In this document: piece after piece, positions 1,318-31,850 of the stretch
Layout of the letters: every line of letters starts with the position of its first letter
How positions within the stretch are numbered: position 1 is the stretch's first letter
DNA from: Schizochytrium sp. TIO01
Taxonomy: Eukaryota > Protista > Bigyra: Labyrinthulomycetes
DNA length: 64,000 bases
Direction of reading: 5' to 3'
Assembly (NCBI GenBank): GCA_004764695.1
Contig: SMSO01000032.1
Coordinates: 7,906,483-7,970,482 of the forward strand
The notes under the pieces: model-generated
Told to the model about the DNA's origin: nothing
Databases searched by the model: none
The model's input: the letters and a program-made list of their open reading frames with translations, nothing else
Program-made: the position numbers and the translations under genes

Positions 1318-2604
1318 TCAACGAGCGAAAAAGCCGCCAAAACGACGTCGTAGAAAGCATCCCATCAGGGTTGTTGAAATAAGCATACACATACGAGGCG
1401 AAAGAAATCGGCCAAGAAGACCTTTGCGTGATAAGATGATTGTTGCTGCGAGCCACGTTAGAACCACCTGTAATGGATGCAAGTCAGGTTGCATCGGCTT
1501 ACGTTGAGAAACAATGAACGGTTTATCTTTGGCTCTTTCTTCCCCTTGCTTAATGGTCTGCTCGATGGCAGCGTTGACCTCGTCTGCGTATTGTTCGGCC
1601 ACGCCATGGCCTGCATCTCCATAATGAAGCCATCTGCCACATAATGCCTCTGCGAGCAAGCGTGAATTCCGATAGCCCACAAGAACATCTTGCTTGCCAC
1701 TGACGACAAGAATCTCAACCTGATAAGATCGCATACGCTCGAGGCGAGCCCAACTAATATGATGGGTTACAATAGCTGCGATTTGATGAAGAATACCAGA
1801 AAATCGGAACTCGGGTACTAAACCTGCTTCAATATACTTGCGGGAACGACGAATAAATAAGTATGCATAGTGATCTCGATTTGTAGTTAGACTTTGCGAA
1901 GGGGGATAGTCGCCATAATTGCGGTCTGAAGATGCTATTTCCTCCAGATGAATACGCGGAAAGAGTAACTCTAACCCGGCATTGACGATGTCAACTTCGC
2001 GAAAACCTGAACATGTCCGAAAAAACGGAACAACTCCAGTGACTGGTGGTATTGTACCCATTACCCCCCCCGCGTGTGTGGAGATGAGCGCTACAGAGTT
2101 GAAGCGTTTTGGCGCCATCAACAACAGTTCCTGACAAACCATACCTCCTAATGAGAAACCTATCAGGTTAACATCCGATTTCCAGCCTCCATAGGCACGT
2201 TGCAAATGGTCTAGAAGCTGCAAACAGTCACTTGCAATATCCGTTGTCCTCCAGCGACCTGCAGGGGTATCGCTGTATCCTGTACCCCGATTATCCACGA
2301 CACATACAGTATACTCTTCGCCCCGCTCAATCCCGAAATATTTCAACTGAGGTTCAAAATGTGCGTGTGTCTCGGAAAGCCCACGGATTGACAGGAGTTT
2401 CTTCGACCCGTTTCCATGTACTTCGTAAAATAGTCTATGCTTACCTTGGTGACTGTTGTATACCTCGCAATATTGTGCAGAGCTTTCGCCAAAGTGCAAG
2501 TATGCAGGTCGAGCTAGTTCAGTCTTTGCACAGTGAATTGCATTGTCGGAGCCACCGCCTAAACGAGCGTACAAGTGGCGTTCATCTTGAGATAAAGTTG
2601 ACAT
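1318..2604 (-). CDS. Alpha/beta hydrolase fold protein with hydrophobic C-terminus
   Basis: 428 aa; DNRGTGYSD, nucleophile elbow GFSLGG, candidate Asp (GKQDVLV) and His (DAGHGV); hydrophobic C-terminal segments. Confidence 0.9.
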   Translation of the reverse strand: MSTLSQDERHLYARLGGGSDNAIHCAKTELARPAYLHFGESSAQYCEVYNSHQGKHRLFYEVHGNGSKKLLSIRGLSETHAHFEPQLKYFGIERGEEYTVCVVDNRGTGYSDTPAGRWRTTDIASDCLQLLDHLQRAYGGWKSDVNLIGFSLGGMVCQELLLMAPKRFNSVALISTHAGGVMGTIPPVTGVVPFFRTCSGFREVDIVNAGLELLFPRIHLEEIASSDRNYGDYPPSQSLTTNRDHYAYLFIRRSRKYIEAGLVPEFRFSGILHQIAAIVTHHISWARLERMRSYQVEILVVSGKQDVLVGYRNSRLLAEALCGRWLHYGDAGHGVAEQYADEVNAAIEQTIKQGEERAKDKPFIVSQRKPMQPDLHPLQVVLTWLAATIILSRKGLLGRFLSPRMCMLISTTLMGCFLRRRFGGFFAR

Positions 2605-3449
2605 GACCTAATCAGCCTCTTGTTTGGTTTTTGAATAAACCTCAAGGTTAGCCGCACGCTGGGCTCTCTCTGGCCTTTACACTCACAAACCTTGGAACCA
2701 ATTGCGACAATCAACTATGGACAAACTACACGCCAAGGCTGCTTTGCTTAGGACCAAAGTAGGCAATAAATTGCTAGTGATCGAACAGCGAACAAGCAAT
2801 TTAGGTAACGGCCAGCGCTTATGTCTAGTGTGACCTGGCGTGACTTGGCTTTGAAGTCACCACTGCTCAAGCTTTCAAGAAGAATGTACAAGAGAAGTAG
2901 CAGAGAGAAACATTGCAAGCTGTAATTACTAGTAACTAGCTAGTATCTATAGCATGCCTTAATTGCACTTATATGAGGTAAATATCACAGAGCAAATCTT
3001 GTGTTAGCTTCAGCACATGAAATTTAAACTGCAAGTGCCCCAATGGGGTCTCTTACTTGACTCGATTCTGTTTCTGAAATTTGAAGTTTGTTTTTAGAAA
3101 GTATCTCGTAAAAACCTGATTACATTCATTGTTCGACTGTTTTCTGTTGTTCAAGTTTTCATTTTTTACTCTTTTTTTTACTTAGATTAAATTGATTTTA
3201 AAGTATTCTTTTTTAAATTAAAATGATGTTCTCTGTTTTGTTTTTATTTCTCTGCTGACGAAGAGCTTCTTTTAAATTTCGTATTGTTGTTAGGTCTACC
3301 AAAACCTACTCGAGGTGCGTATAAGTCGCAGATAGTTTTGATCCAAAGTGAAGAAACGAAGAACATATTATTACCAGTTTAGATTTCTATCTACACACAC
3401 TCCACAAGTGTTTCTTCATATTTTTCTTGTTTTCTTGTTTTCTGTTTTT

Positions 3450-3712
3450 TTTTGGTGGTTGCCGGAGATTGCCAGAGGCTCCGATTACCTTTTCTTGATC
3501 ATGTAAATTTATAATCTATATCTACTGTTTTTCTGATATCTCAACGACTGACGATCCGACTCGTCCAGATACCTTTTCTGTTATTTTTTTAATGTTTTTG
3601 TTGCATCATGAGGACTGCCCATTTTCCTCAAGCCGCGTTATCTTGGTATATATGATTTTTTTGGTGCCTCGCGATGAGTTTGCCGTATCATCTTGAGGCA
3701 CTTTAACTGGTT
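3450..3712. repeat. Diverged outlier copy of the linker-hairpin modules of the tandem array
   Basis: Contains TCCAGATACCTTTTCTG, GAGGACTGCCCATTTTCCTCAAG and TGGTATATATGATTTTTTTGGTG, shared with the 4.2-7.2 kb array. Confidence 0.8.
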
Positions 3713-3734
3713 AGTTCTTCTACATATTATAATT

Positions 3735-4172
3735 ATAATACGTTGTGGAGTGTCCATGAGCAACGGCACCTTGGCAGTAAACCCAGACCATTAGCTCACT
3801 CTTCGAGTGCTGAAACTTCGTCATAACCTATGGTCATGTCTTCATTTTAAGTTGCAGATCCGCCATGGTATTCAGAGAGGATGCCAAGCTCTCGAAAGTC
3901 CCAGCGCATTGTCTACAACCCTTCCCTTCGCTTCGACACGCAATTTTTAGATCATTGCAATAGTTGATGCTGCAATGACACGCTTGCTTTCATCAAGATT
4001 TAGAAACCTGAGCTGTGCAGGCTCGAAGTGAAGCATTAGACATGTCTCACCAGTTTACGGTATCGTCAGCTGCACCTTTCGCCTCTGCCTTGTCGCTTTC
4101 TACAAAGGCCATAGCTCCATGAATGTTGCTGTCTACTCTAGCATTCTTGTCGTACTCTCGCCTTGGTATGCA
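3735..4172 (-). pseudogene. Decayed coding-like fragment between repeat copies; family unknown
   Basis: Minus-strand segments PRREYDKNARVDSNIHGAMAFVESDKAEAK, TGETCLMLHFEPAQLRFLNLDESKRVIAASTIAMI* and MRWDFRELGILSEYHGG are broken by stops and frameshifts; higher GC than the flanks. Confidence 0.35.
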
Positions 4173-4175
4173 GTG

Positions 4176-7100
4176 TGTTTTTTGTTTTCTGGTATATATG
4201 ATTTTTTTGTTGGTATCCAAATGACTGCTGATGATGCAACTCATCCAGATACCTTTTCTGGTATATATGATGTTTTTGGTGCATCTTGAGGACTGCCCAT
4301 TTTCCTCAAGACACTTTTTCTGGTATATATGATGTTTTTGGTGCATCTTGAGGACTGCCCATTTTCCTCAAGACCCTTTTCCTGGTATATATATGATTTT
4401 TTTGGTGTGTTTCAAGATGAGCTGCTTGCTCATCTCAAAACACTTTTGCTGGTATATTTATCTAAGTATATGTATCGGTGATCTGATCTGATAGTATGTA
4501 CAATCTTGTGCAAGACAAGAGCAGTCTTGAAAGATGCTGTCGATGTGGTTGATGCTATCGATGCCCTCAAAGTCCGCAATGTCCGCAATGTCCGCAGTGT
4601 CCGCAATGTTCTGATTGGCTGAAGCAGCCACGCTGTATCCTCGTCATAGTTTGTGGTGATTTTTTTTTTGATTTTCTGGTATATATGATTTTTTTGTTGA
4701 TATCCAAATGACTGCTGCTGATGATGCAACTCATCCAGATACCTTTTCTGGTATATATGATGTTTTTGGTGCATCTTGAGGACTGCCCATTTTCCTCAAG
4801 ACCCTTTTCCTGGTATATATATGATTTTTTTGGTGTGTTTCAAGATGAGCTGCTTGCTCATCTCAAAACACTTTTGCTGGTATATTTATCTAAGTATATG
4901 TATCGGTGATCTGATCTGATAGTATGTACAATCTTGTGCAAGACAAGAGCAGTCTTGAAAGATGCTGTCGATGTGGTTGATGCTATCGATGCCCTCAAAG
5001 TCCGCAATGTCCGCAATGTCCGCAGTGTCCGCAATGTTCTGATTGGCTGAAGCAGCCACGCTGTATCCTCGTCATAGTTTGTGGTGATTTTTTTTTTGAT
5101 TTTCTGGTATATATGATTTTTTTGTTGATATCCAAATGACTGCTGCTGATGATGCAACTCATCCAGATACTTTTTCTGGTATATATGATGTTTTTGGTGC
5201 ATCTTGAGGACTGCCCATTTTCCTCAAGACCCTTTTCCTGGTATATATATGATTTTTTTGGTGTGTTTCAAGATGAGCTGCTTGCTCATCTCAAAACACT
5301 TTTGCTGGTATATTTATCTAAGTATATGTATCGGTGATCTGATCTGATAGTATGTACAATCTTGTGCAAGACAAGAGCAGTCTTGAAAGATGCTGTCGAT
5401 GTGGTTGATGCTATCGATGCCCTCAAAGTCCGCAATGTCCGCAATGTCCGCAGTGTTCGCAGTGTCCGCAGTGTCCGCAGTGTCCGCAGTGTCCGCAATG
5501 TTCTGATTGGCTGAAGCAGCCACGCTGTATCCTCGTCATAGTTTGTGGTGATTTTTTTTTTGATTTTCTGGTATATATGATTTTTTTGTTGATATCCAAA
5601 TGACTGCTGCTGATGATGCAACTCATCCAGATACCTTTTCTGGTATATATGATGTTTTTGGTGCATCTTGAGGACTGCCCATTTTCCTCAAGACCCTTTT
5701 CCTGGTATATATATGATTTTTTTGGTGTGTTTCAAGATGAGCTGCTTGCTCATCTCAAAACACTTTTGCTGGTATATTTATCTAAGTATATGTATCGGTG
5801 ATCTGATCTGATAGTATGTACAATCTTGTGCAAGACAAGAGCAGTCTTGAAAGATGCTGTCGATGTGGTTGATGCTATCGATGCCCTCAAAGTCCGCAAT
5901 GTCCGCAATGTCCGCAGTGTTCGCAGTGTCCGCAGTGTCCGCAGTGTCCGCAGTGTCCGCAATGTTCTGATTGGCTGAAGCAGCCACGCTGTATCCTCGT
6001 CATAGTTTGTGGTGATTTTTTTTTTGATTTTCTGGTATATATGATTTTTTTGTTGATATCCAAATGACTGCTGCTGATGATGCAACTCATCCAGATACCT
6101 TTTCTGGTATATATGATGTTTTTGGTGCATCTTGAGGACTGCCCATTTTCCTCAAGACCCTTTTCCTGGTATATATATGATTTTTTTGGTGTGTTTCAAG
6201 ATGAGCTGCTTGCTCATCTCAAAACACTTTTGCTGGTATATTTATCTAAGTATATGTATCGGTGATCTGATCTGATAGTATGTACAATCTTGTGCAAGAC
6301 AAGAGCAGTCTTGAAAGATGCTGTCGATGTGGTTGATGCTGTCGATGTCCTCAAAGTCCGCAATGTCCGCGATGTCCGCAGTGTCCGCAGTGTCCGCAGT
6401 GTCCGCAGTGTCCGCAGTGTTCGCAGTGTCCGCAGTGTCCGCAGTGTTCACAGTGTCCGCAGTGTTCGCAATGTTCTGATTGGCTGAAGCAGCCACGCCG
6501 TATCCTCGTCATAGTTTGTGGTGATTTTTTTTTGAGTTTTCTGGTATATATGATTTTTTTGTTGATATCCAAATGACTGCTAGTGATGATGCAACTCATC
6601 CAGATACCTTTTCTGGTATATATGATGTTTTTGGTGCATCTTGAGGACTGCCCATTTTCCTCAAGACACTTTTATCTTGGTATCTATGATGTTTTTGGTG
6701 TGCTTCAAGACAAGCTGCTTGGCTTGCTCATCTCAAAACACTTTTGCTGGTATATTTATCTAAGTATATGTATCGGTGATCTGATATGATAGTATGTACA
6801 ATCTTGTGCAAGACAAGAGCAGTCTTGAAAGATGCTGTCGATGTGGTTGATGCTGTCGATGTCCTCAAAGTCCTCAAAGTCCGCAAATGTCCGCAGTGTT
6901 CGCAGGGTCCGCAGTGTCCGCAGTGTCCGCATTGTCCGCAATGTTCTGATTGGCTGAAGCAGCCACGCCGTATCCTCGTCATAGTCTGTGGTGATTTTTT
7001 TTTGATTTTCTGGTATATATGATTTTTTTGTTGGTATCCAAATGACTGCTGATGATGCAACTCATCCAGATACCTTTTCTGGTATATATGATGTTTTTGG

Positions 7101-7246
7101 TGCATCTTGAGGACTGTCAAGACACTTTTTCTGGTATATATATGATTTTTTTGGTGTGCTTCAAGATGAGCTGCTTGCTCATCTCGAAACATTTTTGCTG
7201 GTATATTTATCTAAGTATATATATTGGTGATCTGATTTGATAGTGT
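4176..7246. repeat. Nested tandem repeat array: 6 full units of 428/428/464/464/514/451 bp plus partial flanking units
   Basis: Anchor CATCTC(A/G)AAAC recurs at 4431, 4859, 5287, 5751, 6215, 6729 and 7180. An internal 9-mer GTCCGCA(A/G)T occurs 4, 4, 8, 8, 13 and ~7 times. Each unit has four CTGGTATAT(A/T)T motifs. Confidence 0.97.
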
Positions 7247-7288: not shown

Positions 7289-8383
7289 CTAAATGGTGAC
7301 CTCATTTTGTGCCAACTTAACCGGAGCCAAAAGACACCGTCCAAGTGGCACGTCAGCCTGCGGCGCCGACCCGATAGGCTCCAAATGAAAGTTGTTGAGT
7401 ACGTTGTTTTCGGAGCTTTCAAAGATTGCATCGTCGTCGAGTTTCTCCTCGGTAATGAATTTTTCAACCGCCGTGCGATGAACGTTCTCAGCGAGCTTGA
7501 GCGGCTTAGGGTCGAAGAGTATCTTGGGGTCAAGGTTGGACTCAGGAGCATCGAGGTGTGGTGCGTTCGCCTTGGGCTCCATCGCCGTGACCTTGGTCTC
7601 ATCAACAAAGGTCTCCTCAACCTTGGTATCATCCGTATTGGCCTTGGTCTCCTCAGTCCCGACCTTAGTCTCTTCGGTCGTGACCTTAACCACCTCAGCT
7701 TGGACATCAACGGCTTCAGGCCCAGGGTTGGCCACTGAAGATGCAACGGGAAGGTTGGGAATAGAATCGTCTGCTTCCACGTAAGGAGATGGTACATCAG
7801 CCTTCAGTTCAACCTCAGCTACAGATGCAGCTGTGTCATTGACTACATCCTTGACATGCAAATCAGTTGGCGTCTCTGAGACGTCAGACGATTTGTTAAG
7901 GATGTTGCCAGCCTTGTGGGTAACCGAGCTACGCATCTCTTTCTTGCTCTCTTTCTTGACAGGACGACGGCCATTACTTTTCTGAGATAGTCCTTGTTCG
8001 CGATGCATAGGGCAAGCACTGCGAGTGTTGGCCTGGCGGGACTTGCGAGAAGATGCAGCAGTAGAGCGAGCCCAAATCGGCACGTTGGTGTTGCTGTCGC
8101 GAGCATCGCGGCGCTTCTTAAGTTCATCGGACTGTAGTTCCTGACGTTTGGCCTTGAGCTTTTCCAGGGGGCGACCGTAAAAACTCTTAAGGGAAAAGCC
8201 CTTCTCCGGTACAGAAGGTTTTTCCTTTTTTCGCTTATCCGCGCGAGCCTTGACACGAACACCTCCGTTGCTGAATTCAGGAAGGGCCTCGCGCACGGGC
8301 ATACGCGGATCCACGAACTCATCACTCACCTTGACAGCGGCGATTCGCTGTTCGACAGAACGTTTATTCATGTCACTAATCAT
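7289..8383 (-). CDS. Orphan low-complexity protein (basic N-half, acidic Thr/Glu/Val-rich C-half with TEETK-like repeats)
   Basis: 364-aa ORF with GC3-rich codons like neighbouring genes; short internal repeats TEETKV/TEETKA/TDDTKV/VDETKV; no family recognised. Confidence 0.65.
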   Translation of the reverse strand: MISDMNKRSVEQRIAAVKVSDEFVDPRMPVREALPEFSNGGVRVKARADKRKKEKPSVPEKGFSLKSFYGRPLEKLKAKRQELQSDELKKRRDARDSNTNVPIWARSTAASSRKSRQANTRSACPMHREQGLSQKSNGRRPVKKESKKEMRSSVTHKAGNILNKSSDVSETPTDLHVKDVVNDTAASVAEVELKADVPSPYVEADDSIPNLPVASSVANPGPEAVDVQAEVVKVTTEETKVGTEETKANTDDTKVEETFVDETKVTAMEPKANAPHLDAPESNLDPKILFDPKPLKLAENVHRTAVEKFITEEKLDDDAIFESSENNVLNNFHLEPIGSAPQADVPLGRCLLAPVKLAQNEVTI

Positions 8384-10020
8384 AGTAATCCGAGGAAGGA
8401 CACAGAGAACTTAGGTAGCAAGGTATCGTGCTGGCTAGCACGAGCTCACAGAGAGCTCGCTGTGCCTTTTCGAATGAAGATTGGGCAGTAGCTTGATTCA
8501 AGATCTCGAACGGGCTTCGAAGTCTCCGGAGTTCGGGTTTTGGTTTTGGATTTGGTTTTGGTTTTGGTGAGACTCTGGTCTTCTTCGAATTTTGCAAGCT
8601 AATAGAATTGTAAATTATTAAAAGGGGCTGGGCACAGTCGTCATTTGAAGTAGTGCTAAGTTGTTTAAAAGGGCCAGACGAACGTTTCATTTTGATTTCG
8701 TTTATCGGTTTTTAAAGATAAGAATAAAGAAAGTTTTAAATATGGATCATGTTGTGTTGCCCAACAACTGAGCAAGTAAGCAATTAAGTGTCTCTGGGGA
8801 AGAAAGTGAGCATGGAGGTTCTATTGCCTTTAATTCTGCACCCTTCCTTGCTGCAAGGTTTATGTTCCTGTCTTACAAGGTTTACATTAATGCTCGCCAG
8901 TTTCTCCTCAAAACTCCTAGAGAATATACTTACTCACTGCGAGTGTTTGCAATTTAAGACTTTTAATTATATCGTTTGTCTTATCGCTACTCAAGTCTTC
9001 GCATTGCTAGCTCGTTTCCTTTTAAGAAAGACCCGTCTCTCGCGCTCCCAGATACGTACTGCAACTCTCACAACTCCTACAACTACTAGTATGTATGAAG
9101 ACTAATTAGTCCTATACTCGCCATTTAAAAGAAGACACAGTACGATAGTAGAGGTACCTACCATAAAAAGCGTTTTAATGCTTTATATAACTTTCAATGA
9201 AAATGAACTTAAATAGACAAAGAAACAGAGCAAGCCTTTTCTCGCACACACGGCCTCGGCCTCCCACGCCTCTTGCGACCTCTCTCTCTCTTTCTCTCTC
9301 ACTATGCTCGTTTGATCGGCAACCTTGCCTTCCCTTCTGCCTGAGTCAGAGTGGCGCCTGCAGCCGGCGCCCGACAGGGTGAGGTAGCAGCGTGGTCCGT
9401 GATCTCCGAGTCGTTTCCCGCAATCAGGAATCACTCGTGCTGCAAGTCACGAGTAAATGAGGGTGTCGGTGACACGATCGCGCTCTCTCTGTGCTAGAGG
9501 GGCCTCCCTGCAGAAGTCCCAACTGGGTTTCCGCGCAATAGCGTCACTGCAAGAGAGAGAGAGCCCTTGGAAGTGAGTCAAAACTTCAGAGCGAAACCTT
9601 TTTTATTTTATTTTGTTTCTGCCTTTGTTTTGATTCATTTTTTATTTCCAAATACTACGACCTAACTATTCTATTCTATTTATTACTGTTTCTATTTCTA
9701 TTTCTTCCGTTGCAAACCCGCCGGAAGTCCGAGAGTCAAGCCTCATGATTGGATGGTCCACACAGAGGGGCTATAGCAGCTCGCTGGGATAAGAATGTTG
9801 CTGTACCCTGCATCTTCTTTGGAGCTCTTGGACATGAAGGGCTGGCAACTTGACTCGGAAACGAAAAAAAGTTCTACTCGGATGATTGACAAATTGTCAG
9901 CAAAACCATTATTTTATTTTCTCTGAGCTTTGAAGAAGAAAAGACATCAGTCACAAAATATTTTGTCTCTCCGAGAATAGTACTTTCTATCATGAAGACT
10001 GTTTTGTTTTCTTTTTGTTT

Positions 10021-10023
<3 letters not shown>

Positions 10024-10060
<37 letters not shown>
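10024..10060. repeat. (CT)n microsatellite
   Basis: Uninterrupted CT run of about 18 units. Confidence 0.95.
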
Positions 10061-10062
<2 letters not shown>

Positions 10063-11869
10063 GCTTTAAAACGAGATTTGAGTGGTTCGTAATCCTTTTA
10101 GATTTATATGCTTAAACTCGATCGAGAAAGAAGTTTTTAAGGCAATGTTTTTATTTATTTCATTAGCACTCACCCACACCACACTGAAACTGCATTTGAT
10201 CTTTTTTTATACTTTTTTTTCGGAAGGTTGGAGATGTTGAAAGCAATTTACTACTCTTTACAGATTAAGTCATGGAAATCAGACACACGAACATTTGTAA
10301 GTAATGGTCCAGACAAGACGATGGATACTTGTATTGTTAGGCACGCTCATGGACCGGAGTATTATGGGATTAACTATATATGTGGTTTTTTTTGTTTTGC
10401 TTTTTAAATTAATAAGAAGCAGTTTCTAGTTGTAGAATTCATGAAAATCTCAGCACCTTGGTACATGGATTTTTCATCAAATTTGCACTGTAGACTAAAT
10501 GATAGCCTCTCTCTTATTCTTGCATTTCTTTTCAGATTTTTGAGGCTCTTATTAAACAAACAAAAACGGTTATGCAACAAATCGGATTGATGAACAAGTG
10601 GGGTAGCTAAATATGTCAATGAAATTGCTGAGTATCCTTGAAATTCAGTTCGCCCCAATCGCCAGCTTTTGTCTCAATTAAATTTACACGGACATGCTTA
10701 ATTAAAGAAATTCTTAGTTTTGAATTGAATGTCTTGTTCGTTGCCTCGGAAGTTTTTTCGAGATCTGCCGTTGCTAATATCGTTGTTATTTTATCACTTG
10801 CGTTTTACTCCGCTGACGCCTATGCTTCTTTTGCTGTGTAAAGAGTTTCTTCTAGCCTGCAACTTCCCGCCAATAATTTAAATCTTGATGAGAATGAAGT
10901 ATGTTAAGATAAATCAAAAAGTAAAAGAAAAAAAGCCACAGGTCTATTTTGAGAACAGAAGTCAAGATCTTACAAAGAGAGCAAAAGAAGTAACCATAGC
11001 CCAAGATCATACCCTTGTGCTATTCAACTTGAAGACCAACAGATAAGAGAGAGACAATCATCAAGCCATCGAAATTAGGTGTAGAGGTAGCTTTCAATAT
11101 CAAAATTGTTTTTGAGAGACGCCTTCAACTTGGCGACCGTTTCACATTTTTTAAATTTCTTCTCCAATCTTTTCTCTTTTCAGTCTGCAAGCTCGGCCCT
11201 GCAAAGGCAGCCCTCCTGAATTAAAAATGCTATTAAGAAAACGGGTACATGGGCGGGCGTAAAAGTTAGCGACGCACTCGGTTCTGAAATATCATAATTC
11301 GAGAAAATATGCTGCGTCACTCAGGTTATTGTCTAATTTACGGTGTTTGCTTGAATGATGAAAAGATGTTGTTTGCACCGAAACCATTCCGCGTACTGGG
11401 CGAGTTAGTCCTTGGGTTGACACATCTTGTTGCGAAGGCGAAGATGGGCTTATATATAGAAGGATGGAAATGTAGTTGCAAGAGAAACGTCATACAATTA
11501 ACTATACCACGCGAGTAACGCCTCATCTTATTCCCACTGACTACGAGTCACAGAAGGCTAGGCCGAAATTATGTAATGGGACGGCACGAAAAACCGATTT
11601 TTACCGGTTTGCTAGTCTCTTCTTGGCTCTCTCTACTATTTATTATCCATAGTGAGTAGATAGCAGCTCTAGAGTGCCATCTTAATAGATAAATATAACT
11701 TGAATTTGAAACGTCAGCTAGCTGCTTTATTTGTAACTTTTAGGAGATTGAGGATGTACAACATTTGCATAGTACGGAAAGCCTCAAATGTTTCAGGTGT
11801 CAATATTAAACGACAGAGTATTATAGTAATTTGAAAGTTAGGATCACCAGCTACCCATACTAGTCTTTC

Positions 11870-12800
11870 TACTATACATAAGGCAGTCTTTGTATTCTGT
11901 CTCATATGAAATATCATATAAAGCGCGTTGCAGTCTAAGCTACCAGAAACCTTATGGTATCTAGAGAAGAATCAAAGTATACCACCCTTTATAACGTTTA
12001 CTCACTTACTGTATCAAGGTCGACTCTGTATCTATGTAAAACCTGTTCCGCTCCTAAAGAGATAGCTATAATAAAGCACGGAAGCAGAGATCAACCCAGC
12101 ATTGAAGTCCTCATTGTGCAAGCAGTTCTTTCAATGAACTAAAACCAAGCGAACATTGTTTTTAGTCATGGCAATTTCATAAATAGGGGATGAGAAAGCT
12201 TCTTTCGTCGAATGCTTCTTATCGCGTTCCCAGAGAATTATCTTCAACAATTAAGGCAACTTTGAAACGGCATGCGCCCGGTGCACTACTCACAAAAAAC
12301 TGTCACATGTTTGTTTATCTTTTGCCATACGCATTTTAGTCTAACGTAAATTGATTAGACATTTCCCTTTGGGTTCACGTCATCCTTGCCTGTAGAGAGA
12401 ATAAAATGTAGAGAATTGGAAGCAAAACGAATTTCCTGACACTGGATCTTGAACAATATAAAAGAACGTCAAATTCTCACCAGGACATCAGACCTTCGCT
12501 GGCGAATGACTGTATCTCTGGTTTGGAATTTAAATAAAATGGCATTCCCTATTTGCTGTCTATTTTAGAAATGTTGTGTTCATCCATTCTCTTTGCATTC
12601 GGTACATGCTACACAGGCAAAATGTATTGGCAACCCCCTGAGTTATTTTCTCTTTCTGATTGAGAAAGAAATTTAAGTGGTTATACTACATCCTCTGAGA
12701 ATTCGAGCTAAATGATCAAATTGTGCCAGGGTTCTGCGCGTGCATGGATGCTTGCCACTTAGGTCACTTGTGACCACATGCATGTGAAATGATGCTCAGC
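11870..12800 (-). mobile_element. Degenerate pogo/Tigger-type (DDE_1) transposase relic
   Basis: Minus-strand fragments appear in pogo order: SHACGHK*PK..QNP, GLPIHF, EWMNTTFLK* (~12590), MPF/KVALIVEDN (~12255), NNVRLVLV (~12150), DFNAGLISASVLYY (~12085), SLDTIRFL, DISYETEYKDC. They parallel the Tigger consensus LPV.W..N.KAWMT / PFKVLLILDN / NVKVVFLP / DQGII..FKAYY / LDAI / ETI.NC. Many stops and frameshifts. Confidence 0.55.
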
Positions 12801-14739
12801 TTTTGATATTACTAATGTCCTATTCACTATATATAGCACGCACCATGACATGGAATGAGTTAATGAGTCAAATTATACCCTCTGCGTGCTGAGTAGGCGA
12901 AGTGTCTTTCAGAGTAATTGAAAATTTATATATTTTTTGCTTGAAAATTTCACAATATTAACAAAAATGCGAATATTATGTTCAAATTTAAAGATCAAAG
13001 CTTACTAAGGGCTTTAGAAAATTATACTCTTTGCGTGGAAGTGTTTCCAGTCTTGATTAAATCAACACCAAACAGAACATCTGCGCAAAAATCCAAGCAC
13101 AAATAAAAGAGGGTTTGGTGAAAGATATGAGAAGCTTATTCATTTTAACGTGATATAGCTCTCTACTTATAGCACTTCTACCTTTATGGAAACAGAGAGA
13201 TTACGCAATGCTTAGGTACCGTGTGTTGGACTAGGAAGTATGTGGATTCTAGGAACTTTATTTAAAATGTGAAAGGGAAAATATATTAAATTGCGCTTAC
13301 ACTTAAAGTGTTTTTCAGGTCATTAGTTTTGTGCTCATTTTTTCATAGTCTACGTTTGCTTAGGGCATTCATAAGCAAGCAGACTTATGATTTCATAATT
13401 TGGATTCATTTTAAAACAAGAAATTTTAAAAATCATTATTATAAAATCAAAAAAGAGATACGAATAAACTCCGACCATACATTAACCTCTACTATGAGAA
13501 CAAAATTTTAGCATAACACGAAGTATATTTTTTTAATACTTACATCGAAATACTATGTAAGATCGAGCAGATTATATAAAATAAAGAAACTATGTTTTGA
13601 AATGATTTGTTCGTCATGCTATCGATGACTATGAATTACTAGGTACTACACTTTGCAATTATGCTCTTCTCATCCGATTGTTGTGTCATGGTTGAGCAAT
13701 GAGAACAAATGTTACACGTGAACTACAGCACTAGGATTGTGTCTAGTGACAGTAAAGATGGGCTGAAGTAAGACTTTCTCTTCAAATTACTATGGTACTA
13801 TTCTTTATGATTTCCTTTTGCGTTTGTTCTTATTTGGAGTTTTACAGGTTAAAAGACACTCCTTTTCCAAGCAAGCAGATAGGTAAATGTATAGGCAGCA
13901 GCTGTATACTAGGCAACTGTAGAATGCAGGTTGAATAGGCTAAAGGCTGATTAGACCACCTCATATGCCTCCCAGGCTTAAAAGAGTCAGCCCAGGGGTT
14001 CTCAAAGCTCATACGGACGCTAAGCGCTCAATGTGCCTGTTAGTCTTAGTTAGTTCATAGCGTCCACAGAGGAGACCGGCTGGGCCGGATAATTCGTTTC
14101 AAAGTTGTAGAATAGGGACGAGTGACTCTGCTACTGGGGTCTTAAGTTATTCATATAACATGATAAGTAGGATGAATTGCCTCACCTACGATTAGTGACT
14201 TAGCTCAGAGCACCCTGATGGATTTCCTTCTCGAGTTTGGTGTATGTTCTGTAAATTTCACTGCAAATGAGACACAGATGTGACAGTAGGCTCGGAACAA
14301 AGTATGATTGCGATCGTGTTCAATATCTCATTTTTGTAATGGCAACTAAGATGAGTATTTCATACCTGCTATTTTTAGTTAACAGTGCAAATAGGAGAGT
14401 GTGCAATAGAGATTTGGCTTATATGGAAGAGAATAAGAGGCAATTGATGGCTCAAGCACCAGAGACTTGTGCATCGTTGCTCTTTGTTCTTACGTCTTGT
14501 GAATTTGGTTGAGTGAATGTATAAGTAACGCCGGTACGCTTGATGTAAGTGCTTACGTGTTAGGACGGTGAAGTAGGTGCGTGATTGTACAACGTGCTCA
14601 GAGTAAGAAGCATAACGAAAGTCACTGTCCTCAGAAATTGGAAATACCCGATTCTGTTAATTTCTGTGCTGGAGAACATAAAAACTTTTTCCCCGCGCTC
14701 TCTAAGATGTAAGCCGAAAACTCTGTATTAAAGAAAAAA

Positions 14740-15350
14740 CCCTAATTACATCCTAAGCAATATATCAGAAGAAAGTAGACTGCATAAGCGTGTACTAAAC
14801 ATCAACATGTGTTGCATAGCTCTCCTTAGAAACATTCTTTCTACTGTGTTTGAAACAGCATATAGACCTGTTTTGTTGAGACGTAGACTTGAACGGACAG
14901 CGCAGCGTCTTGTTTGCCTAAGAAATTACGAAATGAACGTCCATTATATAAGTCGAAAGCTAAGTTGGCTCACCCGGAGCTGGCTTCTGGGCTTCGAGTT
15001 GACCGAGAGCAGGGTTTAAGCAGACAGCATTCTTTGAAGAGGGTTTCAGTCTCTTCAAAGTCGGATGGCCAATCGCACTGTTTCCTTGTGCGTATGTATG
15101 CGTTAGTTGGTGATATACTGGAGTCCTATGTTGCTCCTCATTAAACACCTGCGCCTCTCTCAGACCCCTGTGAGATACTTGCTGACATGTTCTGTGAGAT
15201 GGTCTCGCGGCAGAAGTTGCAAGCTTCCTCGAGCAGGGGTCGAACTTGATTGGAGGCAAATAGCACCACCTGCAGTAAGATAGTGCGCAGAGGAGGGATA
15301 GCCGTGTAGCCCCTCCGGATAAAACCGACTCGGGTCCCCTGGTCCACGCC
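14740..15350 (-). mobile_element. Possible hAT transposase C-terminal (dimerisation region) relic
   Basis: Minus strand gives YAVSNTVERMF then, after a 1-nt shift, SK (~14825-14862), resembling the hAT motif TSN.VERLFS. Upstream fragmented ORFs 14960-15353. Confidence 0.3.
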
Positions 15351-16919
15351 CACTCTGAGTCGTTCGTTTATCCACTAGTTTTGATTTGATTTTCCTTCGC
15401 CACATCACTTTTTTTTTTATAGCTTTCATTTTTCTAACTTACCTAATATCATTCTTTCTTTTTAAAATCATCTGAAACTTTTTAAAGGTATTTTTTAAAA
15501 TTAAACATTAACACAAAAACAAAATAAAACAAAATAAAACTTCCGTTATCTCGCCCCAGGAAGTCCTTGCGAGTCAAGCGTTTGATTTTCGATTTTAGAA
15601 TTTTAAAGATACGATTAAGCGAGCATAAGGTACCTACTACCAAAGTATTTTCCTCCTTATCTCTTTTCTCTCTTTCTTTTTTCCTGAGAAAAAGTGAGTG
15701 CGGCGTGCTTACCCTATGCGGACGTTGCCTAAGAAAATCTACTTGAAGAAGTAAGATCACGGAAGGCGCAATACAGGATCCTTGGAGTGTGGAGGTGGCG
15801 TCCAAGTTGGTTCTAGACTGGCTTCGTTATCTTGATAGCTCATTTCTAAGCTGCAAGCTAACAAACTGATTTTCATTTGAGACTTTAAGTCCCTATGTTC
15901 TAAGTCCCCTTCAATTTTTCCATCATCCTGAAACAGGCAAAAAGTAAGTTTTGATGTCGATACACTGCGGGAAAACCTTCTCCTTCGCTGAAAATCAGTT
16001 AGGCATTCATAAATAAAACAATATACTTCCAAAAATGAAGCATAACTCTTTTGAATTCGATTAGGCCTACGCAATTACAAACTACTCAATTAATACCAGT
16101 GAATCGCGTAAGCTTTTAACTATGCATATAATCGATTTTTTTCAAGGAAAGCTTGAGAAAGACTCATCTTTGTTAGACTACAGTGCGCGAATCGCCTGAG
16201 GCTAAAATGTTATTGTTGATGATGCTATTCCTAAAGTTTACTTTTAAGGCTTTCATTCAGTGTCGCGAACACTGATAAGAAATAACCCCCCCCCCCCGTT
16301 CTCATTGATCGTTTAAAATTGCATTGCTCTCAGCGTTTTGCAGTTCATTCGAACCTCCTCATATCATACGGAATGGAAACGAGATCGAAATAAATTTTAC
16401 AAGTCTATCATGATGATCTCGTGAATTCTCTTTTGTTAAAGTCTGGGATTTCTTGGTGTTAGGGATTATTACCATCTATGTGATTGCGAAAGCCAATGAC
16501 AGCATTCAGTCCAGGGTAAACATTGTACCTTATTGTCACTATGCTAAACCCAGCAATTTGAAAAGTAAGCTGCGATTTTGAGCTCATGTCTCGGTGGATT
16601 CTCGATAGCCCACGCAACAACCCCGATCTATGATCACTATAAAGGAAGGGTGAACAGGTCGCGTCACACATGAAGGTATGCTTATTTTCAATTTAAAACA
16701 AAGACTTAAGAAAATTAATATCAATCAAAGCTCGATAAAAAAACAAACAAAGCAGAAAAAATGGAAGACAAAGGAGCTGAAAAAAAAAGTAAAAAAGAAG
16801 AGTGCAAAGGTGATCCATGGCTTCGGATTGTAATTTTCATCGATACCAAGGACATCGAACTAGAAATGTTGGCACGTAGATTCCAGGTTCGCCTTAAGAA
16901 CACATACCAGACAATCTGC

Positions 16920-21914: not shown

Positions 21915-24900
21915 ATGTCGGATGCTGAAGACAATAGCAGCGTAGGAGGCGCTGAGGAGGAGAAGGTCACGGCCCCCGTTGACAAAAGTGGCAACGATTC
22001 TGATTCAGACTCCAAGAGCAGCGGAGGCTCTTCCTCTTCGGGCAGCTCAGGTTCTGGCTCTAGCGATTCTGAAGATGATGACGGAAAGAAAGGAAAAGCT
22101 GGCAAAAAGCTGAGCAAGGGTGGTGCCAAAAAGCCGGCCAAGAAGAAGGACGCTGGCCGCGGCGGTGCCTCGCGGTTCGTTGACGACGAAGCCGAGGAAA
22201 GCGACCAAGACCGCCAAGACGACGACGATGATGACAATGACAAGGCTGAAAACAATCAGTATGAGTATGACGACTTCGTTGTTGCCGAGGATGAGGACGA
22301 CGGAGAAGTCTCTGACAGCGATTCGGATGATGACAGCGAAAGCAACAAGAGGAAGCGAAAGAAGCGTCTGCGTAAAGGTCGTAAGCGGCCAAAGATTTCA
22401 CAAGATGATCTCGATCTCATCCGTGAAAACCAGCGACAGACTGGTGGTGACTTAAGTGCCGAGCAGGAGAATCGCCTTTTCCATGGTGAAGATATCCCAG
22501 AGGATGACTTTGACGGTGAAGATGAGTTTGATGAGGATAACGACTTCATTGTTGAAGACGACTACGAGGAAGGCGCACCACGTCCTAGACAGAAAAAATC
22601 CAAGGTCAAGCGTAGCGCAGAGGAAGAGGAGCGTCAGCGAGCTGATGACCTATTCAACAGCCTCTTTGGCTTTTCCAAGAGCGAATTTGAGGGAGGCGAC
22701 GAGCAAGACCGTGAGGTTGAATATGGCGATGCGGAAGAGGCCCGAGTTAAACAGCTTCGCAAACAGCGGAAAAGGCAGATGGAGGAGATGTTTGATTTTT
22801 CAACACGTGCAGAAAACTACATGCTCGAAGAGGATGACATCATCCGCAAAACGGATCTCCCCGAGCGTATTCAGCTGCTCGAAAACACTGTTGATGTGAA
22901 ACGATCTGCGCGCTATGGCGGAGAGTACTTCATGCGCAGCCCTGAAGAGACTGATGCGGGTGCATCAGAGTCGAAGGAACGCGGCTATGGTGACGATGAA
23001 ATGATGCTTGGCTCCGCTTCACTTGGGGTTTCTGTCAATGTCAGCGGCGGTTCCAGCGAAGCACACCAACGCGATGCACAGGCAGAGTGGGTCTATGCTC
23101 ATCTTGACAAGCAGTATAAGGATCGCTATGGAACCGGCTTGCCCAAACCTTCGTACGAGCTTCGTGAACCTATCCGCAAGGCCCTGGAGCACATGCAAAG
23201 GGAGTCCATGGAGGTTCCTTACGTGTACCTGTACTGCGCACGCGACATTGCGCCTCTAACTCTCGACGATCTTTGGAGTATCTTGGACCTTTCCATTCAA
23301 TACGCACGGACGCTCAGCCGTCGCGACCTGCTGTGTAAGCTCGTTCGCCGTGTGGTACCCTCAAGCGTGGAAGATGACGAGTCAGTGTCTGCAGAAAACC
23401 TCAATGAGCAGGCGGGACATCAGATTAAGTTCTATCGTGATGCCCTCATTGAGCGAATTAAGCGTCTGCGTGGACTAGACCTCACCATCCAGCACCTTTC
23501 GGAAATTCAAAAGTATGTCACCTTTATGTTTGGTGAGGCCCTTTCAGAGGCCCAAGTTCAGGCTGCGCGCAGATTGCGGAAAGAGAAACGAAAGAAGCAA
23601 AAACAGATGTTCAAACAAAAGAGCAAAGCCAAGAACAAGTCAAACGAGGTTAGTGAAATTGATGCTCTTTTCAACGAAGATAATGACGAAGACTATGTTC
23701 CAGAGGGCGAGAAGAAGCCTAGTGAGGTCAATGGAGACAATCTCGAGGCCGCGAATGGTGACCAGGCCGCTGCAGGCGTAGTTACTGAGTCCAAAGAAGG
23801 CGAGGCTGGCGCCGCAGGCGGCGAGCCTGCTGGTCTGAGTGACGATTCCAGTGATGACTCTAGTGATGAATCCAGCGATGAATCCGTTTCTGAAAGTGAG
23901 GCTGGAGGGCCTGGATACGTCTCTGATCAAGAGTCTGATGCCGGAGAGGATACACAGAGGCGCATCCAAGCTCATCGTGAGAAGGCTAAGGCTTTAAAAG
24001 AGAAGCAGAAGAGACGTGCAGACCGAGCAAAACAGAATACAACACTGCTTAAACGCAAAACCGTCAACGAAGGTGGCCAGCGTGGACGCAAGGAAGCACT
24101 TGGACTGATGCGATTCTGTGAAATGGTCGGTTCCGCGGCTCGCTTCGGTGCCTGCGTTGAGGAAAAAAGCCTCCTATGGAAGCCTCGGCAACCACAGGAT
24201 GACACTGACTCTCCAGAAATCATGGCAGCTGTTGCCATTGGGGATGAACTTCGAACGGAGGCAGCTGTCGAGGCAGCTGTGGTACAATATATGGCGTATG
24301 AGATTTCTTCTGAACCTCGTGTATTGACATACTTGCGCGATCTTTATCGCCGACATGGTAAAGTTCGTACGCGCCTTACGGTACGTGGACGTGCACAAAT
24401 TGCATCTAACCCGTTGAGCGACTATTACCAAGTTTGCTCGTTAAACTACAAGCCCTTTGCAAGCTTTTTGAATTACAATGCTCAGATGGAGGATTCCAAC
24501 GCTATGGACGTGGCTGAACCTGATAGTTCTGCTCCTCTCGGACGCCCTGCAAGACCTGATCGTGATCGGAAACCGGATCATGAAACACAGGTTCTGCTTA
24601 TTCTTAACGCCGAGTCTGAAAACCTTTTGACCAAGAGTGTGAACCGTGCTGAGCTTACTAAAATTATTCTAGCTGAACTTGGTAAGTATTTGCTGACCTC
24701 AGAAGGTGTGCAAAGCGTTGTGGATGGTACTCGCCTCAGTGACGTACCCAGAAACCAGGATGAAGACCAAACATTGGAACTTCCTCAGAAGGACGTATTC
24801 AGGCCATGGGATCGCATTCGCTTTGATGTGCTTTTGCGTGCAATTACTCGTCATATGCTCAAATTTATCGAAAAGACTATGTTTCAAGAACTGGCCTCAC

Positions 24901-27887: not shown

Positions 27888-28125
27888 CTACGGTGGTGGC
27901 AGCGGCAGCGGCGGCGGCTACGGTGGTGGCTACAGTGGTGGCAGTGGCAGTGGTGGCTACGGTGGTGGTAGCGGCGGCGGCGGCTACGGTGGTGGCAGCG
28001 GCGGCGGCGGCTACGGTGGTGGCAGCAGTGGCGGTGGCTACGGTGGTGGCAGCAGTGGCGGTGGCTACGGTGGTGGCAGCAGTGGCGGTGGCTACAGTGG
28101 GGGCTATGGTGGTGGCAGCTACGGT
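27810..28125 (+). repeat. Gly/Ser/Tyr-coding minisatellite (about 27-bp GGCGGTGGCTACGGTGGTGGCAGCAGT units) spanning the SPT6 stop
   Basis: GGGYGGGSS-type repeats continue for 86 codons past TAA 27885-27887 in the +1 frame, to the stop at 28146. Confidence 0.9.
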
Positions 28126-29707: not shown

Positions 29708-30637
29708 TTCCAGATTCCTTTTGCTCTCTAGTAGCATGGCCGGTTGTAAAACTGTCAGCCTGAGTAATATTATATTGCACAGAGTCTGCTATGGAAGCAA
29801 CACTGCCACATGCGATGTTTTGTGCTGTGCGCAGGTGTGCGAATATTTTGCCGGTGAATTGCTCGCTTGAGAGAACCGCATTTGGCCTGAGGACTTACCT
29901 CGTTATCCCTTTACCTTGAATGACGCGGCTATGTAAAGTAGTAAGAGGAAGTAAAGAGAAAGAGAAAGTAGAAACATTTTTTTATGCCTATCTGTGCATT
30001 CACTAGTTCTAATTTTTAGTCTGGCGACGGACAATCTGAGTGGAGGGAGGGTGCAAAGGAAGCACAATGGATAATTTGTTCAAACTCACATTCATTCATT
30101 AAATAAAAGCTATGAATTGAGAAAGAGTGTTAGAGTCCCCTATTACATTTGGGACTTAAATCTTCGGTCTAGTTATTTCGTGGAGTGGAACATATGAGCG
30201 AGCAACAGTTGCTAACCAGCAAATACCATGAAGGTGATGGGGAATTTCATGATATGGAAAATTTCTTTTGTGATCACATCACCATATTTGTAGACAAAAC
30301 AAACTAGATGATAATTGAAAGATTCTTGAAGTGGACTAGGTTTAGTCTTTGCTTCACGTTCCCGAGGAGATATGATAAAGGATTTTTTCAGGTGGTCAGA
30401 TTTTTTCTCTACCCCCCCCCCCTTCCTTTTGTCTCTTTGAGTTATGAGTTTTTGAGGAGATTGGTGTGCGGTTACAATAACAAAAGGCCCGGTGGAAAGC
30501 GGATATGCTCTTGGCTAAAAATGCCTATAATAAGAAGTGACTCTTTAATAGTACAATTCCGCTATCTATTGCTTGCTTTTATCTCGAAGTTGCACATTTG
30601 CGGCGTTAGGCTGAAGGTGTTCATTGATTATTCTTGC

Positions 30638-31435
30638 TTATTCTTGCTTAGTCTTATCATCACCCTCACTGCGGGAACGCAAGCTCTTAAGGGCACCCTT
30701 CACCATGCGGTAGAACCATTGGTACTGAAGCGCAAACCCAGCGGCGTAGCAAAACAATACAAGCGTTCCTTTTACCTTGCCAAGTTGGTAAACTTGCTCT
30801 ACAGAGCTAAAAAGGCACACACCAGTCCAAGAGTACATAATAATACGACTGAGAAACCAAAGGAAGACCATAGCGAGGCCGTTGTAAAAGTACATCGTGG
30901 ATGTCTTCATGCCTGCCTCGTAAAGAAACCAGCGCTGATTGACAAACGGGGTGGTGATTTCACAAATCTGGCCTACCGTAGTGAAGAATCCTCCAATGTC
31001 ATAATTCAAAAAGATACCCCACGTGGCAAGAATGCAAAGGTGATGCAAGAGGTTTTCCACCCAGCCTGGCCAGCGAGTGCGATACCAAACACTGAGCAAA
31101 AGGTCGCTTGCAATATAGCCCATAAAGATTTGTGCTGCTTTAGTAGATTCAGGTGTAGTGTAGAAAAAGTCACCCCTGGTCAGGATGCTTGGGTCTTTGA
31201 CAAGGGCTCGGATTGACAGTCCGGTGATAAGTGCAGCATGGACAGTAGAAACCATGCTTGAGCACCAGTAGCCACGCTTATCACGCTCAATCTTGCGGTA
31301 GGTCTCAAACATAGGTGCAAGTCCAGATCGGCACATCCAATACAGACCATGAAAAGCAAAGAGCCATGGTGCCGATCCACGAGCAATGTCGCGTACAATT
31401 TGCACAATATCGCGGTCCTCAATAAGGGCCTGCAT
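30638..31435 (-). CDS. TLC (TRAM/LAG1/CLN8) domain membrane protein, TMEM56/TLCD4-like
   Basis: VSTVHA, GYIASDL, LLHHL, EITTPFVNQRWFL, YFYNGL..WFLSRI, LQYQWFYRMVKG; first ATG at 31435. Confidence 0.9.
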   Translation of the reverse strand: MQALIEDRDIVQIVRDIARGSAPWLFAFHGLYWMCRSGLAPMFETYRKIERDKRGYWCSSMVSTVHAALITGLSIRALVKDPSILTRGDFFYTTPESTKAAQIFMGYIASDLLLSVWYRTRWPGWVENLLHHLCILATWGIFLNYDIGGFFTTVGQICEITTPFVNQRWFLYEAGMKTSTMYFYNGLAMVFLWFLSRIIMYSWTGVCLFSSVEQVYQLGKVKGTLVLFCYAAGFALQYQWFYRMVKGALKSLRSRSEGDDKTKQE

Positions 31436-31850
31436 CTTCACCTTGTACTATTTCTTCGTGCGTGCAGACAGCACAACGCAAACAACAACTGCGCACAGTA
31501 GTTTGGCGACTATTGTCGCTACTACTGCTTGTCCAGGTAGGCCAGGAACAAAAGTCCTTTGAGAAGAAGAAGTTGCCCGATGTGAAATACGAGCTCTCGA
31601 AGCCAGAAGCCGTACCAGGAGCAACAGGTGGGGCTTCGCAAGCAGCTCTATAGCTCTCAATAATCGACAGGTCTTGGGTCACAAGACCTTCTGCGCGGCA
31701 ACAAATCCGCGTCCGTCCGCCAATCGGTCGGCCTTCCGTGCCCGACCGAGGTCTCAATGATGTAGATTTGCGGTGACAGAATCTCTCTAATTAGGCGGAA
31801 TAAAGAAACAAAATATTGATTAAATAATTAAAATGCTTATTGTTACTTTT

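Follow-up and report, generated by a model that had tools for sequence, protein, structure and literature searches.

A single-locus higher-order tandem repeat of stem-loop modules in Schizochytrium sp. TIO01, possibly transcribed from the minus strand

The stretch of Schizochytrium sp. TIO01 DNA that we analyzed (64,000 nucleotides of contig SMSO01000032.1, hereafter the window, with position 1 as its first letter) contains a repeat locus of ~3.8 kb at 3435-7246, which lies between two minus-strand genes and which we consider non-coding. An initial annotation had described this locus as near-invariant linkers alternating with variable hairpins that keep their pairing through compensatory changes, and had proposed a structured-RNA or single-stranded DNA cassette system. 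This raises the question of whether the hairpins are kept because they act in an RNA or whether they are something that a tandem repeat can produce without any function. We found that the locus is a three-level, locus-specific tandem repeat. We lean, tentatively, towards a young higher-order repeat that is probably transcribed from the minus strand, either into the tail of the upstream gene's transcript or into a non-coding RNA. We give almost the same weight to a neutral satellite that is kept up by template switching.

We detected 25 modules in the locus, each made of a constant A/T-rich linker and a hairpin. They are 42-77 bp long, and the full ones are 62-77 bp. Over the modules lies a longer period, for which Tandem Repeats Finder (TRF) reported 464 bp, 4.8 copies and a score of 3260 within 5000-7244, along with a further 62-bp sub-array at 4247-4407 and arrays of the 9-bp sequence GTCCGCAGT. 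We defined the start of a unit as the CTGG of the A linker, which puts the starts at 4189, 4676, 5104, 5568, 6032, 6541 and 7010. The units are then 487, 428, 464, 464, 509 and 469 bp long, the seventh is cut off at ~235 bp, and the copy number comes to ~6.5. The ~430-510 bp period over shorter modules that had been noted earlier is real, with units of 428-509 bp over full modules of the length given above.

The layout of a unit is A-B-C-D, where A, B and C are hairpin modules of 62-72 bp and D is a segment of ~230-310 bp that houses the GTCCGCAGT minisatellite; unit 1 carries two B modules. Segment D runs from a degenerate linker through ~120 bp to the minisatellite and then ~65 bp ending in a T-run, and its minus strand has one UGUACAUA and one AGCCAATCAG per unit. 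The units differ in length because the copy number of the minisatellite varies (4.7 to 13.2). The 13-mer core of the linker, CTGGTATATATGA, has 15 copies in the array, and degenerate copies stand ahead of C and the D segment. The parts of the locus are as follows.

4189-7246, minus strand: main array of six full units and a partial seventh (7010 to ~7240), from TRF, linker positions and alignment
4676-4747, minus strand: example module A (unit 2), a linker and an 18-bp stem with four G-U pairs
4748-4809, minus strand: example module B (unit 2), a linker and a 9-10 bp stem with a 10-nt loop, from inverted repeats
4810-4876, minus strand: example module C (unit 2), a linker and a 16-bp stem with a 5-nt loop and tandem U-G/G-U
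4877-5103, no strand: example segment D (unit 2), from linker positions, unit alignment and motif counts
4568-4609, no strand: 9-bp minisatellite GTCCGCAGT/GTCCGCAAT, from TRF
4996-5037, 5428-5501, 5892-5965, 6356-6474 and 6879-6944, no strand: more minisatellite copies, from TRF
3435-3711, minus strand: old diverged block of four modules (fourth type 3435-3499, A' ~3501-3580, B' 3578-3641, C' 3643-3711), from a covariance model, BLAST and MAFFT
3712-4188, no strand: diverged spacer D' of the old unit, from the unit alignment

The copies form an age gradient in identity: units 1-4 are 99.5-100% identical, unit 5 98%, unit 6 94%, unit 7 92%, and the old modules ~84% (82-85% in BLAST against the array modules). 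As a whole the old unit is ~60% identical to the array units. At its ends, its spacer D' is similar to the D segments of the array, but the interior of the spacer occurs once and hardly aligns, and we did not find a second copy of D' in the genome. This gradient fits the outcome expected of unequal crossing-over or replication slippage. The A-B-C-D block was amplified recently, with the right-hand units being older.

Identical central units with older units at the edges are the classic signature of unequal crossing-over, and this is where a neutral explanation has to be considered. It says that the locus is satellite-like DNA, a locus-specific higher-order repeat without sequence-specific function, in which quasi-palindromes drive slippage and expansion and are re-perfected by intra-strand template switching. 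Template switching would yield both the "compensatory" changes and the fast hairpin divergence in single mutational events, and any excess of G-U pairs on one strand would be due to chance or to a mutation spectrum that differs between the strands. The confinement to a single locus and the freely varying copy number of the 9-bp minisatellite also speak for it, and short dyad symmetries are common in satellites (PMC5889037). We regard this explanation as only slightly less likely than the one that we favor, and the hairpins themselves are what it has to account for.

The hairpins are where the initial annotation had placed them. A (4212-4253), B (4284-4311) and C (4407-4443) are all present as inverted repeats, and the shortened last B still pairs TCTTGA (7105-7110) with TCAAGA (7117-7122). 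In the old block, the C hairpin reads GTGCCTC/GAGGCAC at 3664-3701, the A hairpin has ACGA at 3544-3547 and TCGT at 3561-3564, and a fourth hairpin pairs CGGAG (3463-3467) with CTCCG (3479-3483).

Their strength is above chance when compared with dinucleotide shuffles. As minus-strand RNA, hairpin C folds at -23.5 kcal/mol (z -7.4, with z -4.0 on the plus strand) and ranks among the best-folding 70-nt windows of the whole 64 kb. Hairpin A folds at -19.2 kcal/mol (z -5.1, with z 0.0 on the plus strand), and B has z -3.2 on the minus strand and -0.8 on the plus. Values of z < -3 occur in 6.4% of the minus-strand array windows versus 0.2% of the background, which consisted of GC-matched 70-nt windows from the 64 kb. 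When a 428-nt unit is folded as minus-strand RNA (z -3.5), the centroid holds A, B and C as separate stem-loops with the linkers unpaired. Segment D of unit 2 has a significant fold on neither strand (z +1.1 and +0.3).

The choice of strand matters here. Under energy parameters for DNA, B and C fold equally well on either strand, as the neutral explanation would have it. Hairpin A is significant on neither (z -0.5 and +0.4) and makes a poor DNA palindrome, yet as minus-strand RNA it is fully paired through its four G-U pairs. The asymmetry that had been pointed out earlier, C-A mismatches on the plus strand that become G-U pairs on the minus strand, is also real: there are 36 G-U cells on the minus strand versus 5 on the plus in the model-guided alignment described below, although the cells are not independent and we estimate ~8-10 events that favor the minus strand versus ~3 that favor the plus. 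All of the one-sided differences between B and C give G-U on the minus strand, and so does each of the three stem transitions in the C variant of unit 6. A folds convincingly only as minus-strand RNA, and a minus-strand RNA, which the annotation had preferred, is the best fit overall.

Types A, B, C and the fourth type of the old block are paralogues of one ancestral stem-loop. With MAFFT, 13 minus-strand modules line up as AAAAG, a 5' arm, a loop ending in GCAG(U/C), a 3' arm and (C)ACCAAAAA-AUCAUAUAUACCAG. When only the B and C modules are used to build a covariance model, it recovers every A module at 30-49 bits, and in the old block it scores 25 bits for the fourth type (3435-3499), 52 bits at 3578-3641 and 67 bits at 3643-3711. 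It did not match A', which we placed from the MAFFT alignment and its own fold.

Divergence between the types is uneven, with 9-12% differences in the linker and 38-50% in the hairpin (Fisher P = 0.001-0.009). The description of a constant linker with a variable hairpin stands to that extent, but the hairpins are not free spacers, as they are three recurring paralogues. One stem position is G-C in C, G-U in B and A-U in A. Such wobble intermediates are unlike the products of template switching, and it also counts against the neutral explanation that conservation is 4-5 times higher in the linker than in the hairpin and that four paralogue types hold the hairpin in the same place with the same loop motif.

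Is the pairing maintained? B and C have 11 pairs in common in the MAFFT register; 88.6% of the cells of these pairs form standard minus-strand pairs, and in four of the pairs both sides have changed. The covariation score is 0.43, compared with 0.32 in shuffled alignments (1 of 500 was as high) and at most 0.25 in slid ones. For 17 distinct modules in a model-guided alignment, 93% of the stem cells pair on the minus strand, 9 of the 11 pairs are changed on both sides and the score is 0.66, compared with 0.30 shuffled (0 of 500) and at most 0.17 slid; this alignment was fitted to the structure of the model, so it leans towards structure.

We also used a test that depends less on alignment, in which the observed number and type of substitutions were placed randomly on one paralogue and the fold was compared. 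When A, B and C are compared with one another, the P value of the retained fold is 0-0.024 for minus-strand and 0.0007-0.25 for plus-strand RNA. For the outlier copies in the old block, C has P = 0.0035 on the plus strand and 0.03 on the minus, A has P = 0.05 on the minus, and B was not significant, with two pairs lost. Pair counts are thus above the shuffled and slid controls, and outliers C and A, unlike outlier B, fold better than with randomly placed substitutions, although template switching could also yield covariation of this kind.

For the question of transcription, the neighboring genes are of interest.

7289-8383, minus strand: upstream flanking gene, an open reading frame (ORF) of 364 aa with a codon-usage score of +0.30 (gene-like)
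1318-2604, minus strand: downstream flanking gene, an alpha/beta hydrolase (Pfam PF00561, E = 2.5e-16)

The array begins ~45 nt past the stop codon of the upstream gene, and the start codon of the hydrolase is 831 nt past the last module, both in the minus-strand sense. Transcription of the minus strand seems probable to us because this strand is the sense strand of both neighbors and because the array lies so close to the upstream stop. At that distance the upstream transcript either ends at once or runs into the array.

A monomer of 62-77 bp on the minus strand, consisting of AAAAG, a stem-loop and (C)ACCAAAAA-AUCAUAUAUACCAG, was duplicated long ago to give A, B, C and a fourth type known only from the old copy. 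The linkers stayed nearly constant as the stems diverged, with pairing kept by way of G-U intermediates and two-sided changes. In the reading that we favor, minus-strand transcription of the array would be the reason why the stem-loops have been kept. The product would be a non-coding RNA, or it would belong to the upstream gene, as a long 3' tail or through read-through. We would expect this transcript to fold like beads on a string, with at least 25 independent stem-loops and unpaired A-rich linkers between them, and the copies of linker and stem-loop would be a likely platform for RNA-binding proteins.

Several points weigh against this reading. The recent units vary at much the same density in linker, stem and D (~0.10-0.12 variable sites per site), so no constraint is visible on that time scale; the neutral explanation predicts as much. 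All of the covariation comes from paralogues inside one array, the independent events are few, and the larger of the two alignments has the lean noted above. Template switching at quasi-palindromes is documented to create and maintain stems with compensating changes, without selection (PMC8794818). Outlier C' has a lower energy on the plus strand (-20.7 vs -17.7 kcal/mol), though its z is stronger on the minus, and the two pairs missing from outlier B' are uncompensated. If one strand had accumulated C-to-T and A-to-G changes in excess, the result could look like the G-U asymmetry. In addition, no Rfam family reaches its threshold in the array. The G-U pattern and the poor quality of A as a DNA hairpin argue against the neutral explanation, but not decisively.

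A stronger form of the RNA idea is that the array is the gene, or the extended 3' tail, of an undescribed repeated structured RNA of thraustochytrids, read from the minus strand and with at least 25 stem-loops on conserved A-rich linkers, which would have arisen by tandem duplication and been preserved by compensatory evolution. We find this rather doubtful. Such an RNA would be a multivalent platform or sponge for RNA-binding proteins with one Pumilio-type UGUACAUA per unit, or it would be cut at the linkers into hairpin RNAs of ~40 nt. The Pumilio-type motif is on the minus strand at 4495-4502 and in the same place in units 2-6, one per full unit. These sites make up 6 of the 8 matches to UGUAHAUA in the window, and they are effectively one independent occurrence. 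The repeat units of NORAD each carry a Pumilio-type motif, and the array units here likewise have one each, again effectively a single occurrence.

The units hold other motifs as well. A perfect NF-Y-type CCAAT box, AGCCAATCAG, is on the minus strand at 4611-4620 and in the same place in units 2-6. There is exactly one per full unit and none elsewhere in the window, where 0.23 would be expected. Each linker holds a TATA-like TATATATGA. Read in the plus sense, the CCAAT box comes first and the TATA-like motif of the next A linker follows ~66 bp later, a promoter-like spacing. We dropped the idea of a poly(A) signal (UAUAUA and an A-rich element in the minus-strand linker) when the 3' flanks of 14 window genes turned out to share no motif. 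A scan for bacterial-type terminators gave 0 sites.

From these motifs one could argue for an array that acts at the DNA level in cis, with protein-binding or promoter-like modules, or as a replication or chromatin element whose hairpins are cruciform or other non-B DNA. The array also borders a 14-kb gene-poor AT-rich stretch, and poly(dA:dT) tracts exclude nucleosomes. We consider such a role unlikely. The motifs were picked post hoc from one repeated unit, so that each is one independent occurrence, and strand-asymmetric G-U pairing would be meaningless for duplex or cruciform DNA.

A search of the 64-Mb assembly did not support the proposal of a cassette system. This locus alone matched the 28-nt linker, even when 3 mismatches were allowed, and it was likewise the only match for hairpins B and C, for the left flank, for a whole unit and for the module covariance model, for which 150 of 11,151 genome candidates were scored. 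The 13-mer linker core has its 15 array matches and two chance matches elsewhere in the genome. When we scanned metagenomes with the linker pattern, we obtained 10 contigs with one chance match each, without hairpin or array.

A mobile or viral remnant would take the form of tandem Helitron 3' ends, a viral hr-like or rolling-circle origin, or recombination sites. On the plus strand, CTGG and a T stand 8-12 nt beyond each hairpin, which has the form of a Helitron 3' end (hairpin, ~10 nt, CTRR, T), and baculovirus hr repeats are imperfect palindromes in units of ~70 bp. We give this reading almost no credence, and it is largely refuted: besides the lack of other copies of hairpin or linker in the 64 Mb, we found no viral, Helitron, Rep/helicase, integrase or recombinase gene among the window ORFs, so the suggested co-occurrence with such genes fails, and the neighbors are housekeeping genes. 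The GC content of the region is only slightly under the local average. Viral hr-type repeats were rejected separately, as they need several dispersed regions in a viral genome or provirus and here there is a single locus.

The resemblance to a Helitron terminus is therefore one of form only (hairpin, CTGG and T), with no dispersed copies or Rep/Hel gene. Baculovirus hr, Helitron 3' ends, BIME/REP and CRISPR all share with the array imperfect palindromes that alternate with another class of sequence. However, those systems are multi-copy or tied to dedicated genes (viral, Rep/Hel, cas), unlike this one eukaryotic chromosomal locus, and CRISPR spacers are unique whereas the "variable" parts of the array recur.

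The closest class is that of locus-specific higher-order tandem repeats with dyad symmetry, and the locus belongs to it. It has both a constant period and diverged monomers within a homogeneous unit. Like higher-order-repeat satellites (alpha-satellite higher-order repeats and dyad-rich satellites, PMC5889037), it has diverged monomers arranged head to tail in a recently homogenized unit, older units at the edge, short inverted repeats in each monomer and an inner microrepeat of variable copy number. Classical satellites, in contrast, are abundant and found at many loci, whereas here there is one 3.8-kb locus on a gene-dense chromosome arm. It also differs from satellites in that the divergence of the monomers is very uneven, with a constant linker and a fast stem, and in the G-U pairing on one strand.

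Long tandem repeats are known from another thraustochytrid. The LORE-TEARS of Aurantiochytrium limacinum have units of 366-529 bp repeated 1.8-22.6 times, with families at nearly all chromosome ends, between telomere and rDNA, and the same paper lists 34 singleton long tandem repeats (bioRxiv 10.1101/2023.06.15.545109). Our array comes from the same group of organisms, its unit size and copy number are in range, and it has no similarity to known sequences. A link to LORE-TEARS had been suggested earlier, but we do not see one: the window is at 7.906-7.970 Mb of a 9.04-Mb contig (the genome is 64 Mb in 37 contigs), which makes the position of the array interior, 1.07 Mb from the contig end; the array is unique in the genome; and we found no rRNA gene in the 64-kb window. 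By analogy, the array more nearly resembles the singletons of that paper.

If it is transcribed, the array would be comparable to long non-coding RNA repeats such as the Xist A-repeat (PMC6316617), which likewise has iterated stem-loops, single-stranded homopolymer-rich linkers and local tandem duplication. In Xist the structured core is conserved and the linker varies. The array shows the reverse.

A further comparison is with tandem small nucleolar RNA (snoRNA) clusters of euglenids, trypanosomatids and plants, which also have head-to-tail units of a few hundred bp with several small structured elements in each. This leads to the idea of a polycistronic small-RNA cluster, in which each module would give a 40-70 nt hairpin RNA cut at the constant linker, the product being snoRNA-like or a substrate for Dicer or RNase III. 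The constant linker with differing structured parts and the unit organization would suit it, and there is a weak SNORD25 match at 7160-7241 on the plus strand (22 bits, E = 0.24). That match is under the gathering score (39 bits) and occurs in one unit only, and the array lacks the C/D and H/ACA boxes and the guide pocket of snoRNA clusters, nor does it have an Rfam match at gathering score. In particular, neither strand has the RUGAUGA of a C box and the CUGA of a D box joined by a terminal stem, and the stems are continuous (with a bulge of at most 2 nt), without a pseudouridylation pocket. At 9-18 bp the stems are too short for miRNA-type precursors, and we found no near-complementary target of the hairpins elsewhere in the genome. 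We judge a small-RNA cluster to be quite improbable. By eye, the linker gives AUGAUGU or AUGAUUU and CUGG, breaking the k-turn of a C/D-box snoRNA. The H/ACA class, defined by a hairpin with an internal pocket and an ACA or AGA box 3 nt from the 3' end, was rejected on the continuous stems that have no pocket.

Our view that the array is non-coding comes from codon usage. We trained a log-likelihood score on 11 window ORFs, and held-out genes score +0.15 to +0.35. The array ORFs score -0.45 to +0.11, with the 114-154-aa minus-strand ORFs at -0.26 to -0.28. One could still think of repeated exon-intron units of a protein gene, since the inner repeat of 9 bp preserves the frame, the two commonest repeat variants are synonymous in the minus-strand L-R-T frame, and minus-strand ORFs of that length are present. 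We find this very improbable. The codon usage of the array ORFs is like that of non-coding frames, every frame meets stops inside one unit, and no Pfam-like or homologous protein was found, including in an exact look-up of ten array ORFs in a protein collection. A phmmer search with a 126-aa minus-strand ORF against 1.84 billion proteins gave only low-complexity L-R-T matches. The best of these, P0131 (91 aa, from another assembly), has N(F/Y)DEDT..W..P(L/I)RTLR followed by L-R-T repeats, like the minus strand of segment D, and might be derived from a related minisatellite in a relative.

The two leading readings would matter in different ways. Should the array act as RNA, it would be the first element of repeated, structured, non-coding RNA to be described from labyrinthulomycetes, and a clean natural case of tandem duplication and compensatory change building a multivalent RNA. 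Aurantiochytrium and Schizochytrium are industrial producers of docosahexaenoic acid (DHA) whose 3'-end and regulatory signals are poorly known, which gives the question some practical interest. If the neutral explanation is true, the locus is a warning that apparent covariation can be strong, and the strands asymmetric, among paralogues of one tandem array that have no RNA function, and this would bear on how "covarying hairpins" are scored in sequence scans.

As for the surroundings, the genome has a size of 64 Mb, a GC content of ~45% and long, intron-poor ORFs, in line with published thraustochytrid assemblies (PMC7179369). We did not find a Pfam domain in the 364-aa product of the upstream gene; over the N-terminal 125 aa it shares 51% identity with a relative's protein, so the gene is conserved, though unnamed. 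The other genes in the window include SPT6, Hus1, a TPT transporter, TAP42, an RRM protein and GCS (glutamate-cysteine ligase); the hydrolase, SPT6, Hus1, TAP42 and GCS are housekeeping genes. The GCS is identical to a protein that shares a 90% identity cluster with a transcript of MMETSP0958, a sample of Aurantiochytrium limacinum; the taxid in the header of that transcript, 87120, belongs to a fungus and is probably a transposition of 87102, A. limacinum. The plus strand is T-rich over the array (AT skew -0.2 to -0.3), and likewise over the adjoining minus-strand gene. Beyond that gene, 8400-16900 is 8.5 kb without an ORF of 110 aa or more; its GC content of 32-41% is the minimum of the window, and the genome holds no second copy of it. 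This stretch and the array make up a gene-poor AT-rich interval of ~14 kb with 7289-8383 as the sole ORF, in otherwise compact surroundings.

A few observations elsewhere in the window are worth recording. The SPT6-like ORF is at 21915-27887 (1990 aa), and a 27-bp tandem repeat (GGTGGCTACGGTGGTGGCAGC...) coding G/Y/S begins near its stop, at 27828-28125. This repeat may be a low-complexity C-terminal extension of the SPT6-like ORF, reached through another frame or an intron. The convergent genes at 40237-49191 (plus strand) and 49279-50322 (minus strand) have 87 bp between their stop codons, which means that their 3' untranslated regions are very short or overlap. Finally, ORFs on opposite strands overlap at 30308-31441. 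The minus-strand ORF (30638-31441) has a codon-usage score of +0.20 and looks like the real gene, and the plus-strand ORF (30308-31216), with a score of -0.09, looks like its shadow.

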